Part shown: positions 3,240-8,814 of the stretch, one piece after another
How positions within the stretch are numbered: position 1 is the stretch's first letter
How the letters are laid out: each line of letters opens with the position of its first letter
Origin: Oikopleura dioica
Taxonomy: Eukaryota > Animalia > Chordata
NCBI GenBank assembly: GCA_907165135.1
Contig: OU015567.1
Location: forward strand, 15,004,001-15,068,000
Direction: 5' to 3'
DNA length: 64,000 nt
The notes under the pieces: model-generated
What the model was told of the DNA's origin: nothing
Databases searched by the model: none
What the model saw: the letters and a program-made list of their open reading frames with translations, nothing else
Translations under genes and position numbers: made by a program

Positions 3240-5029
3240 TCAATAAATCAATAGAAAATGATCTTTACCCTATTTATTCCAAAATCTCCGCGAATTCAAG
3301 GACAAGGGGCAGATTGTTTTCTCAGCGATGTTGATAAGTGTTACAGTATCTCAAAACGTTACATGAAAAATTGACAGTTAGAATCCGTAGGAAAACAAAA
3401 TTCAATCATATCGCGGAGTGGGCTAACAGTAGCTGCTACTGTGTGCCCAAATAAGATTATTTCCATTGATAAAAATTACAGCTGCTCCGGGCTCAGCAGT
3501 TGAAAACGTGGACCGTTGCGCAATGGTTGTGAGTTAATTTTTGGGTTCATCGAAATTTGAAACAAGAAAATATCAAAAATAGAAGAGGTGCTCTATAATT
3601 ACGCTCGATCCATGTGGTCTGACCAAAACCGGCGTCATAAAAGCGTCTGAGTTCTTAAAATAGCTCCCGGAAGTTCCTGATTCAAACACCTGTTTGTCGT
3701 TATTTGTTTACATCAACCTTAATCCCGTGATTTCAAGTAAGCCCAGATTCTGTTGCTTTTCCGCTCCCAGGTTCCATCGCTCCAAGATATTCTATGTGGG
3801 TTAGAGTTTGTTTCTGTGGTGGCACTTTCCATCGCTCTGCGGCCGGCGGCCAGATGTCAAGGTCCAGATTGATTCAAGCGTACAGTCTGACAAGTAGGCG
3901 AAAAACTCTTAACCTTGACCAAGTACAGTAAACGTCGCGGCTAGACTTACAAGTTTTGTAGAGACATTGAACCTGCTCCTCTAGTTACAGACTAGATATA
4001 CGTAAGTTAACTACCTATGCCTAGGAATATTCGTTTTACTCTGTTTCAATCCATTCTTACAGTTTTGTTATGCAATGGAAAGAAGTGCAGAATTGCTCTG
4101 AACAAAACAAGTTTAGTAAATAGTCTCGGCAGTAGTGAGGAAATTCAAAAGTGACCTTTCGATAGAACACACCTCTAAAGCTATGGTCAGGCGGATTCTT
4201 CCAAAACAAAATTAATCCTGCGAATCAATAAGGTGTATTTTGCAAAAGTATTAACTTTGGATTCTCTTGGAAGAATACAAAAGGGGCAAGTTTGGAATAA
4301 GAATGCCGGCATTGAATGTAGAAAGTGCGGTGATTTCAGCTGTGTTTTAGCAGGGTGGGCTTTGTTTAGGCACACATTGGACGTCCTCTTTGCTCGTATA
4401 AAAGGCAAAAAACCACAGCTAAAATTTCGGACTATTGATTCGATTTTGACAAGGGCACACATACACAACCAACAGCGAAAGTCACAAAAGTCAAATCTCT
4501 GCAAAGTAGTTGAGTAGCGTCTCCGGCAGGTGTCTCTCTCAACTTCTAAGTCGCTCGTACCTAACTCGAGAGCGGGGCCGGCATTGACACGTTCCGTCAT
4601 TGAACTTGGCCATTTCACTTGAACATGTGCCTTGTCAGAGACCTAGAGAATGCTCACTGTGCAACTGTGCTCTTCTTCTAAGAGAATTATCAGGCCTTCA
4701 GAAGAAGGTCACCTTCTTCAACACATTTTTTTTCTCGAACTATTTCAAAAGTGCCTCGTTGTACTTTTTTCTGTGTCGTAGGGATCAACGAAGCTAGGGG
4801 TAACGGGTAGGCCTGTTTAAGGGACCGCATGGCGCCTCAGAAGGAACCAATGTCTAGCGCCAATTTCAGCATCGAGACCCTGATGACTTTGACTTGACTT
4901 TAGTTCTTTCGTTGAAAATCTTCGGGTTGGAAACCAGAGCTTTCTCGTTCAGAAAGTTGATTTCGTGAGTGTATTCGTCAGTGACGTTTTCGAAAGTATA
5001 GAGAAGACCTGAACAGTAAAGAAAAGAGG

Positions 5030-7062
5030 ATGAGAATCATTCGAAGCCTGGTTATGTTCCTAAGTGCAACCTATGGAAGGTAAGCTAAGAAAAGCGAAAG
5101 ATCTTATGCCAAAAAGCTTATTCTAAAGATAAGATAGAACGGTTTTTGTCTGTCATATGCCGGTAAGTAGCTTGGAGACCTTCCAAAGCAGCGAACTTAT
5201 GTTTAATTCGCGAGGTTCTAATCCGCGAGGCCAACCCTTTGGTCTACGAAAAAAATGACTCAAAGTAACTCTACTGTACATCTTCTAACTGTTTATATTC
5301 AGTGATGATTTTGTCAGAAGATTGAATGCGAAGAAGGAGAACCACCTTAAATTTCTGAAAGAGAAGATAAGCGGGATTATTGAATCCGACGAGTCCGTTA
5401 CCGATGGTAACAGGTCCCGCATTGATCCCCGAAAATTTCAAGCTATTAATCGTCTTATGGATAGTGACCCGAATATGTTCACTAATAATGAGCTCTCGGA
5501 GATGATTTATCAAAGTAAGTTCCATATGGTCTTTAAATGATGAGAACCTGCAGTCTTTAAAATCGTCTAAAGCTGATAGTCTAAAATTTTATAGTCTTAA
5601 AAGCTTGTGTTAGAATAAAAGAATCTATGAAGCATCTATTGATGATGCAAAGCCCGAATGAATATTTATTCTTTGAACGTCTGCCGGCAATCTTTTACCA
5701 ATTCAGAGACGCCGGTTATGACGTCGAAGAAAATTAACTTATTGTTGAACCCTTCCATGTTTAATGATGACCTTTCAGTCACCGACACTCGAGAAAGAGA
5801 GTGGACTATCAAAATGGCTCCCCCGGGAAGAGGGTCGAAAGTGAAGAACATGCAATTCAAGGTCCAAAGCAAGCCAAGCTACGTCAATCCCAAGTGCTCC
5901 AAACACTGCAAAATGAACTTCCGCATTCAGTTTAGTGGAAAAACGCCCTCTGGAGAGCACTTCAGACGAAGTGAAGTTATTGAACGAGAGTTGCCCAAGG
6001 TATTTGACGTAGGAAAGCAAATAATATCCTGATTTAAAGGGAGTTCTTGGCTGCCCCACCGATCATTGCCAAGCCTTTACCTCCTTGAACTTCGAAACCG
6101 AGGACCCACTCCCCAAGATCTTCGATGCTTACGACAGTGCCGTTAAGGATCACTCGACTGATTTGAAAATCAAAATCAGTCCATTCGGCGGACGTTTAAA
6201 TGTACATCTACAGGTACCAGCATGATGAAGACTTAATTATTCATTGATGCTTTTGCGGATCAAAAACCTTTTCTATGATTTCGACAGCCTGAAATCAAGG
6301 AAGACTATTTGCTAAGCAAAATTTGCTTTGGCTGTTGATTGACGCCCTGTGTATTTACTTTCGAAAGAGGAAAGTTCAGAGCGTCATGCAATTAGTTGAT
6401 ACTCCCACATTAGTTGATGGGAAATAAACTCAGCCCGCCGCCAATAGTGATTATTGTTAATTATATCGAACTGATTTGATTGTTCTCAAAGATGTGACAA
6501 TATGTTTCGGAGGTGTCGCGGAATTCGCGATAAGATTTTCTGTGACCAACCGATCATTTCTCACGGATAAGTTGTCATGAGACCGAAGAACCGTTTAGCT
6601 GTTAATTTTAAGCCGTTCAATCCCGATAATTCTGTAAATAGCAGTTTAAGGACATCTGGGTCGTCGTCAACTACGAGTCAAAGGGCCATCCTAGCAGACA
6701 CCGTCGAGATACAGCCAAATTTCACGACGACAATAACAGGAACTGCGGCCTTCGTCGTGTTGAAGTTGACTTGGACGAGTGGTATCCTCATCTCAAGAAC
6801 GTTGTCTATTCGCCCAAAAAATTTACGTTTACATTTTGTGAAGGTAGATCTTTCAAATAACTTTCTAAACTGATCCTTTAAAATAGGGTCCTGCGAGGCC
6901 GAGAAACACTACATGGCTCGTAATGGCGATGACCGATTTGACATGTGTTGCCACGCAGTGGAGTCCACCCACTTGGAAATGATGCTCTTCGACTCAAGCG
7001 TTGACGGTTATCGCCACGAGAACTCCCCCTCCATGCTGGCTCAGTCCTGCAAATGCTTATGA
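5030..7062 (+). CDS. Divergent TGF-beta superfamily ligand precursor (~363 aa, 6 exons)
   Basis: Exons 5030-5079, 5318-5514, 5707-5999, 6040-6213, 6642-6843 and 6887-7062, all GT-AG and phase-consistent. Signal peptide MRIIRSLVMFLSATYG; RHRR furin site; mature domain C..CEGSC..CC..CKC with all 7 cysteines. AATAAA overlaps the stop. Confidence 0.9.
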
Positions 7063-7451
7063 ATAAACCCGCACCCGTCCCTATTTTCATAACGACCTTT
7101 TTATCATCTCATCCTTTTTCTTCGTGAGCCATAAATCAAATGCGCGACTCTGACAAGCAAACACCTTCGGCCAAAGTGAAACTTCAGCCCTTTCAAAAGT
7201 CACATAAAAAATGATCAAAACCCGAAATGAAAAGAAACAAAAATCTGCTTCGCGCTTCGACCTAAAAGCTTCCCATCCTCGCCCAGACACTCTAGATGGG
7301 ATTAAGAACAAACGCGTAGAAAATGCAAAACACTTGCTGCTGCAATCATTTTCTTCAAACCCGTAAACCTGAAACTTGATAATTGTCGACAGATCTTACG
7401 AAGAAAAGTCTTTTCTTCATAAGATGCATCGATCATTAATGATGGTTCTTT

Positions 7452-7733
7452 CGGAAATATGCGATTAGAATTGGTACAGGAGCGATTCTTCTATAATTTG
7501 GCTAGAATCGGTATGATACCCTAACCCTAAAGCCTAACCCAGGAGACTATGCCCCTCGGCAACCCCATCCCCCAAAAGCCAAACCCAGGGGCTAACCCTA
7601 CCCCCGGGACCCCCAGTAGGTACTCTCAGCCCCCTAACTCTAATACCTAACCGAGAAAAGGTTTCGTATCGTACCAATTCTAGCTTTATTGTAGAAGAAT
7701 TGGTCCTGTACCAATTCTAATTGTAACATTCCG
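7452..7733. mobile_element. MITE with 68-bp imperfect TIRs, 6-bp TSD and internal CCCTAA-like repeats
   Basis: 7452-7519 is the imperfect reverse complement of 7666-7733. TTCTTT flanks both sides (7446-7451, 7734-7739). Interior includes ccctaaccctaa. Confidence 0.85.
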
Positions 7734-8814
7734 TTCTTTCAAATAAAAAAAAATCGAAAATTAAACGAACTCAAGAATCAGGCGCCAAATTCATCAAAAA
7801 AGAACCATATTCACCAGGGTCCCTACCGGTTATTTTCCCGCATGCCCACTATCTCGAAAATCCCCTAAATGAAACGAAAGACTGAATTTCAATTTTGGCT
7901 GATTGCGTTTGCTCTTTACTAGTCTGTCAAAATTTCCCCTTATTGAGCCTGTATGGTAGTAGTTCATCATCATTCGCCCGCTGTGCTTAGAAGGAATCTC
8001 TATTATAAATTTTATAATTTATCATCATGGGTGTAACACTAATCCGATGCGCTTGCATTTAACACTTTTCGTAAAAAAAACTTTGCTTTAGTCCACAAAA
8101 ACATTTTCTATAAAATGGGCACAACTCACAAACAACTGTAACTGTAAACTGATCGTCCTTATATTTCAGCATAAACTGATCTTCTGATACTGTATTTCCG
8201 TTCTAAAAGTTCTATCCGAAAAGATCGTAATCAAAATTTCAAGTTCGTCTTTTTTCGACTTCTGTATTTATCAAGATTTTCAATCACAAAATTAGTAGAA
8301 ACGTAATCTGACCCGATGTCACTGAAAACTATCCGTAGAGACAATTTGCTGCTTGTTCATTTATATTTATTATTTCTACTTTGGTTGCGTTAGAAATTTA
8401 CTTTTTGCTTTATTCATTTGTTGAAGTTGTGACCATATCATGTCCACACACATCTAAGAAGAAATAAAAGACAAAATCCTCAAAATCCTCACGAGTTCAC
8501 TGGCAAGTGATAATGCAGTAGATTACTGTATGATGCAGGCTGGAAAAAGAGTCAACACAGAATATGCTGCCTTCTTTAGTGCTTGATTGATAGTGATAAG
8601 CTATTTTCTACCAAATGCACCTTGCTAATCAGAATAGTTTTAGCAAATCGTCCATCACTAGGAGTTTACACTTGATACTCGCCCTGACCAGATTGCTTGT
8701 GAACGAGCAAGTTAATTTCAAAAGGACTAGAATACGTTCGATCGGACACAGACTGGTACTGTCCGCCATTATTTGTATTGAATAAATTTAAAATTCATGC
8801 ATTTTTTTGCACAA

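Follow-up and report, generated by a model that had tools for sequence, protein, structure and literature searches.

A six-exon gene for a putative secreted ligand

We analysed a 64,000-nucleotide stretch of the Oikopleura dioica genome (the window; C5:15004001-15068000, contig OU015567.1, within a genome of 64.28 Mb in 19 contigs), in which a gene at 5030-7062 had been predicted, from the letters alone, to encode a hidden and highly divergent TGF-beta (transforming growth factor-beta) family ligand. All positions without a contig prefix are those of the window. The stretch 4700-7400 was read, and its GT donors and AG acceptors were enumerated. Open six-exon GT-AG models were found exclusively on the + strand, running from ATG 5030 to TGA 7060-7062, and the six-exon gene of the original prediction was thereby reproduced, with exons that are conserved without indels in related contigs.

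The related contigs were found by a word search with the 124-amino-acid open frame around exon 3, which returned open reading frame (ORF) fragments from Tara Oceans metagenomes and one Logan assembly; the corresponding contigs were then fetched. Searches of the window's own genome for a paralog of this locus found none, and because the locus is single-copy there, the related contigs are taken as orthologs from other populations or lineages. Two of them are close to the window: L019 shares 94.8% nucleotide identity over window coordinates 3801-7584, and L009 shares 87.7% over 5334-7441. The others, from Tara metagenomes, represent two far lineages (L010/L013/L014/L017 and L011/L018). The features of the gene are as follows.

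5030..5079, + strand: exon 1, from the ATG through the signal peptide (MRIIRSLVMFLSATYG, with cleavage before the next residue, S), and donor GT at 5080; open model
5303..5514, + strand: exon 2, prodomain with the conserved N-glycosylation sequon NRS; open model, codon usage and conservation
5779..5999, + strand: exon 3, prodomain with a CxxxC pair; conserved acceptor and far-lineage identity
6040..6213, + strand: exon 4, prodomain with a second CxxxC pair, GCPTDHCQAFTSLNFETEDPLP; far-lineage conservation
6651..6843, + strand: exon 5, last part of the prodomain, followed by the furin site, the N-terminal arm, Cys1, finger 1 and the first Cys of CxGxC (Cys2); shared acceptor
6696..6707, + strand: RHRR furin-type site (R-X-R-R); sequence reading, identical in L009 and L019
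6887..7062, + strand: exon 6, remainder of CxGxC, the short heel segment, CC, finger 2, CKCL and stop; PF00019 match
6895..6945, + strand: 17-residue heel remnant EAEKHYMARNGDDRFDM between CxGxC and CC; sequence reading
7062..7067, + strand: polyadenylation signal AATAAA, which shares its first base with the end of the stop codon; identical in L009

The boundary of the signal peptide, between MRIIRSLVMFLSATYG and the S that follows it, was assigned by the -3/-1 rule. A prodomain of 222-246 amino acids lies between this leader and RHRR, and the mature peptide starts at 6708, directly after RHRR. With exon 5 starting at 6651, the precursor is 341 amino acids long when exon 3 starts at 5779 and 365 when it starts at 5707; neither model gives the 363 amino acids proposed at first. 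The exon 3 acceptor AG 5777-78 is present in all lineages, the far ones included. An alternative acceptor at 5705-06 would move the start to 5707 and add 24 amino acids; this extension (5707-5778) is open in all lineages, yet the changes within it are mostly nonsynonymous, and either start may be used.

Two further details of the original prediction had to be revised. Exon 5 had been started at 6642, but the AG that this requires (6640-41) is CG in L009, whereas AG 6649-50 is common to the window, L009 and L019, which places the true start at 6651. A stop-containing exon at 6288-6338, suggested as the source of a prodomain-only isoform, was rejected as a conserved coding exon: L009 has lost its stop, nonsynonymous changes outnumber synonymous ones there by 6 to 1, and a deletion lies after it.

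Exon 5 ends within the Gly codon of CxGxC (phase 1), where a 43-nucleotide intron (6844-6886) interrupts the motif. Because this intron splits CxGxC, no single ORF holds the mature domain, as had been noticed from its absence in the ORF track, and a six-frame scan of the genome with PF00019 misses the gene while finding four other loci.

Conservation and selection

The codon usage of each exon was best in the proposed frame, within the top 1-10% of the window's short open frames and at or above the mean of its long ORFs, whereas introns and flanks were negative in all frames. Comparison with L019 revealed 20 synonymous and 3 nonsynonymous differences, giving a ratio of nonsynonymous to synonymous rates (dN/dS) of 0.035. 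For L009 the differences were 50 synonymous and 23 nonsynonymous (dN/dS 0.095; 0.073 in the mature domain), with only 2 amino acid changes against about 6 synonymous differences in exon 6. Gap columns were present in introns and absent from exons (0 exonic vs 68 intronic for L019, and 0 vs 57 for L009), and exon 2, for instance, aligned to both contigs without gaps. Exon 1 is 100% identical in L019, which retains every GT and AG. L009 likewise retains all splice sites of the final model, together with RHRR, all seven Cys, the stretch of 17 residues between CxGxC and CC, and AATAAA.

In the two far lineages, exons 1-4 share 50-79% amino acid identity with the window; their boundaries are unchanged, the leader resembles a signal peptide, and the sequon NRS is present. 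L010 retains the ATG, a hydrophobic 22-amino-acid leader and the AAG/GT donor of exon 1. Identity in exon 2 was 53% (L010/L013/L014/L017), including DGNRS and SDPNMF...SEMIYQ; it was 62-66% in exon 3 and 50-79% in exon 4, the ends of which are identical. Taken together, the comparisons give good support to a real, functional gene under purifying selection. A pseudogene was rejected on dN/dS and on the indel pattern.

The same data bear on whether the exons belong together. They might not form one expressed gene, being either a silent relic or a set in which exons 5-6 belong to a transcript apart from the signal-peptide exons. Raw RNA runs gave zero reads on the exons and zero junctions, and a library of 1.84 billion representative proteins holds no predicted protein with exon 6, as would be expected for such a locus. 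The runs are labelled as the same species, yet they come from a diverged lineage: the few reads recovered are 90-95% alike to the window, lie on the flanks only and carry the L010-type insertion. Because the coding exons are about 70% identical between lineages, exon-free reads are no test of expression or junctions, and this blank is uninformative. Exon 6 is missing from the protein library because gene callers skipped the short exon 5/6 ORFs on the related contigs. A relic or a split transcription unit would also have to accommodate dN/dS of 0.035-0.095, exons free of indels beside introns with dozens of gap columns, and the conservation of splice sites, frame, seven Cys, RHRR and AATAAA, and we regard it as highly improbable.

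A mature domain with a shortened heel

The mature peptide quoted in the original prediction was reproduced letter for letter. It comprises 103 amino acids after RHRR, with one Trp and seven Cys at 13, 44, 48, 66, 67, 100 and 102, so that successive Cys are separated by 30, 3, 17, 0, 32 and 1 residues and the chain ends in CKCL-stop. The cystine-knot framework of the TGF-beta family (Cys1, about 28-30 residues, CxGxC ... CC, about 31-32 residues, CxC, one residue) is thus present. So is the layout of a TGF-beta precursor, with a leader, a long prodomain and RHRR 103 amino acids from the C-terminus; the predicted signal peptide, prodomain, RHRR site and seven-Cys knot were all read in their places and are conserved in the related contigs. 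All seven Cys, together with the motif MCCH, are kept in the window, L009 and L019, and the CC pair with the interchain Cys is therefore retained, as had been proposed.

The type I receptor wrist of the family is usually recognised by about 28-31 residues between CxGxC and CC and by a W-x-x-W motif. Here the segment has 17 residues and the domain one Trp. Because the segment lies wholly inside exon 6, this count is independent of splice choice, and the length is the same in L009 and L019. By comparison, three TGF-beta paralogs in the same genome (L001, L002 and L004) have 30 residues, including an NHA(I/F)xQ helix, and an alignment of BMP3/GDF10 sequences has about 31. About 13 residues of the usual type I receptor-binding region are absent from the ligand, and in the MAFFT alignment a gap of 16 columns spans the pre-helix loop and the first part of the helix. 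The shortened wrist with a single Trp was thus borne out. In an AlphaFold half-domain model, made from exon 6 alone with a TGF-beta alignment as guide, the finger-2 hairpin was confident (predicted local distance difference test score 79-92).

Probable assignment to the TGF-beta superfamily

Exons were searched singly in Pfam, the PDB, the protein library and the fold tests. Against Pfam, exon 6 matched PF00019 (E 3.1e-4, 21.9 bits) over profile positions 65-104 of 104, and no other family even at E<=10, with DAN, Cys_knot, PDGF, NGF and Spaetzle among those absent; orthodox paralogs score 40-56 bits with their last exons over the same profile region. Exon 5 alone had no Pfam match. When the exons were aligned by hhalign to 11 BMP3/GDF10 sequences (alignment A1), exon 5 gave P 0.0023 with Cys1 to CxG in register, and exon 6 gave P 0.013 with CC to CxC in register. 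BLASTP against the paralog L002, which is BMP3/GDF10-like, gave E 0.013 for exon 5 (Cys1 to Cys2 in register) and E 0.092 for exon 6 (the last 10 residues only). In the atlas of the ESM protein language model, matches in which count as leads only, exon 5 scored 0.87 with its ten best matches all TGF_beta (PF00019), and exon 6 scored 0.93 with 201 of 256 features shared and its top 50 matches all TGF_beta (PF00019).

Other searches added little. A word search with a paralog exon gave one match, the follow-up of which yielded BMP3/GDF10 fragments only. Neither exon 6 nor exon 4 had a match in JGI metagenomes, and 4000-8000 had none in Rfam. Four weak library matches of exon 6 were FG-GAP/VCBS-type repeat proteins and were rejected as chance similarity to NGDDRFDMCCH. 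PF00688, the prodomain family, was found genome-wide by an exon-level scan in the L001 gene only, a scan that is poorly sensitive on split exons.

The mature domain is very divergent, since single-sequence searches were empty and its Pfam score is low relative to the paralogs. The evidence from several tests is weak but concordant and suggests a TGF-beta identity, and the searches support the view that relatives are detectable solely in Oikopleura-like contigs. The hidden and highly divergent ligand of the original prediction thus gained support from the sub-threshold PF00019 match and the in-register profile alignments. Of the two profiles named there as a check, applied here exon by exon, PF00019 matched exon 6 (21.9 bits, below 27) and PF00688 matched no exon.

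The observed gene structure, purifying selection, Cys framework and shortened segment, together with these matches, are best explained by a functional single-copy Oikopleura gene for a secreted, furin-cleaved, heel-truncated TGF-beta-superfamily ligand with a putatively remodelled type I site, a reading to which we assign a probability of about 85%.

Several observations weigh against this reading. Exon 6 is the sole scoring exon, and alone its 21.9 bits fall below the PF00019 gathering cut-off of 27. Exons 2-4, the prodomain, have no Pfam match, PF00688 included. A phmmer search of the PDB with exons 5 and 6 returned nothing relevant, and phmmer with exon 6 against the 1.84 billion representative proteins returned no TGF-beta protein. 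The first 20 residues of the half-domain model, that is, the heel remnant, form a low-confidence coil. Foldseek with this model gave no significant match; its top rows were TGF-beta ligands, which are not independent of the guiding alignment. Contigs of the far lineages all end in intron 4, so that they cover exons 1-4 and no mature domain. Finally, the RNA runs, which come from the diverged lineage, have no reads on the exons and hence no splice junction.

Some of these points would suit a secreted protein from a different cystine-knot family (DAN/CTCK, glycoprotein-hormone-like, GDNF-like or new), in which CxGxC...CC...CxC merely resembles TGF-beta. Many growth factors with a cystine knot share CxGxC and CxC, the Pfam score falls short of the threshold, no pairwise match to solved TGF-beta ligands was obtained, and the fold search was without a significant match. 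However, PF00019 was the sole family to score at E<=10, the exon 6 match reaches the very C-terminus of the profile, and exons 5 and 6 independently point to PF00019. The spacings of Cys1-Cys2 (30) and CC-CxC (32) are TGF-beta-like, and a long prodomain with RXRR about 100 amino acids from the C-terminus is the layout of a TGF-beta precursor. We consider another knot family quite improbable.

Within the superfamily, the gene could, instead of having arisen within its lineage, be a member of a known chordate subfamily that has become extremely derived (Nodal and Lefty are the most plausible), with a short heel that was inherited (Lefty-like) or secondarily acquired. The top atlas match of exon 6, as a lead, is a cluster of fragments of Squint, a Nodal-related protein. 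Nodal proteins have a CEGxC motif and a CGCL C-terminus, which are resembled by CEGSC and CKCL in this protein. O. dioica is reportedly without Nodal, to judge from the title of Onuma et al. 2020 (cited in PMC8220140), and a very divergent copy could have escaped notice there. Lefty proteins have only about 18 residues from CxGxC to the next Cys, followed at the end of the chain by a C-terminal extension. That extension is absent here, the atlas match rests on short fragments, and sequence searches link the ligand to no subfamily. Lefty is also without the dimerisation Cys (PMC340941), whereas CC is kept in this protein. Derivation from Nodal or Lefty is thus unlikely, and still more doubtful is a fuller version of it, in which the gene would be an extremely derived survivor of the Nodal/Lefty module that was reshaped into a heel-less, dimer-capable ligand engaging its receptors non-canonically.

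Proposed mechanism and implications

In BMP and activin ligands, the wrist site for the type I receptor consists of the pre-helix loop, the heel helix and the two Trp of finger 1, which also make up part of the dimer interface. For the heel-truncated ligand proposed here, the signal peptide would direct the precursor to secretion, and furin would cleave it at RHRR to release the 103-amino-acid, seven-Cys growth-factor domain with its two fingers and cystine knot kept. A covalent dimer would be expected, as the first Cys of CC, which forms the interchain disulfide in other family members, is retained. Reduction of the CxGxC-CC segment from about 30 to 17 residues and loss of one of the two finger-1 Trp would remodel the canonical type I receptor site. 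The outcome could be signalling through an unusual receptor arrangement (an atypical agonist), or occupation of type II receptors without recruitment of type I receptors (a competitive antagonist).

A precedent for the second outcome is an engineered TGF-beta2 in which the heel helix is replaced by a loop and Cys77 is removed: this protein folds and binds TGFBR2, is unable to recruit TGFBR1 and inhibits signalling competitively (bioRxiv 10.64898/2026.03.23.713733). Altered receptor use or antagonism of the Oikopleura ligand is inferred solely from the missing segment and such precedents.

Oikopleura serves as a model of how a chordate body plan is formed once developmental genes have been lost on a massive scale. 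A TGF-beta ligand that is an orphan and is strongly constrained by purifying selection would be an overlooked addition to its small signalling toolkit. As a natural ligand without most of the heel but with the dimerisation Cys, it would offer a ready-made test of what share of the wrist epitope is needed in signalling, and it may be a natural antagonist. Exon-level scans with hidden Markov models miss such genes when an intron splits CxGxC.

Conserved noncoding segments around the gene

Two intronic patches are conserved even in the far lineages: 5707-5725 in intron 2 (AGACGCCGG.T.TGACGT, with a TGACGT resembling a cyclic AMP response element) and 6484-6545 in intron 4 (a TGTTTCGGAGGTGTC... 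block). Both may be regulatory elements.

Upstream, a block of about 97 nucleotides at 4813-4909, which lies 120-220 nucleotides before the ATG, is almost identical in L010, the coding exons of which are about 70% identical. It contains CCAAT and GGCGCC, and some of the RNA reads from the diverged lineage map here. The block has no Rfam match, its RNA fold is unremarkable, and it includes a 22-codon upstream ORF that has a frameshift in L010. The block may act as a promoter or as an element of the 5' untranslated region, perhaps shared with the ORF at 4187-4618 on the opposite strand.

Downstream, the 3' flank (7063-7441) is 95% identical to L009, which is above the introns (71-87%) and the gene's synonymous sites. 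At 7113-7164 the flank carries a few RNA reads from the diverged lineage, and an imperfect 29-nucleotide hairpin lies at 7380-7438.

Comparison with paralogs and known systems

Some peculiarities were observed among the TGF-beta genes of the same genome. In L001 (C1:11059735-11063049), an otherwise orthodox paralog, C-P-K-C replaces the usual CC pair. The BMP-like paralog L004 (C1:13408213-13411383) has a phase-0 intron inside CxGxC, between x and G, one base from where the gene studied here has its phase-1 intron in the Gly codon. Another TGF-beta-like exon that is very divergent was found in L006 (C4:3847038-3850229, minus strand; match at 3848538-3848729; PF00019, 24 bits). It reads CGGIC, 20 residues, a single Cys in the place of CC, and CSC, and it has no stop but continues into VTISK and then GTACGT. 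With a short heel, a missing interchain Cys and a possible C-terminal extension, L006 recalls the Lefty pattern and appears to fit it better than the gene studied here.

The ligand shares with BMP/GDF-type ligands (PF00019; L001, L002 and L004 in this genome) a signal peptide, a prodomain, RXXR and a C-terminal domain of about 100 amino acids, in which seven Cys with spacings of 30 (Cys1-CxGxC) and 32 (CC-CxC) residues, the CC pair and an end one residue past CxC are kept. It differs from them in having 17 rather than about 30 residues between CxGxC and CC, so that the pre-helix loop is absent and the heel helix incomplete, in having one Trp instead of W-x-x-W, and in a prodomain that is unrecognised by PF00688.

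The heel segment of Lefty is also short, and like Lefty the ligand is a very divergent member of the family. Lefty opposes Nodal as a natural antagonist and is no agonist (PMC340941). It is, however, without the dimerisation Cys (PMC340941), whereas the ligand keeps CC (MCCH in the window, L009 and L019) and ends in CKCL.

A further parallel is the engineered TGF-beta2 described above, the mini-monomer mmTGF-beta2, from which heel helix residues 52-71 were deleted and which carries C77S: in both proteins the heel region is gone, wholly or in large part, and fingers and knot remain. That protein is man-made, derives from the nine-Cys TGF-beta2 and had its dimerisation Cys removed; the Oikopleura ligand, in contrast, is natural, has seven Cys and keeps the dimerisation Cys.

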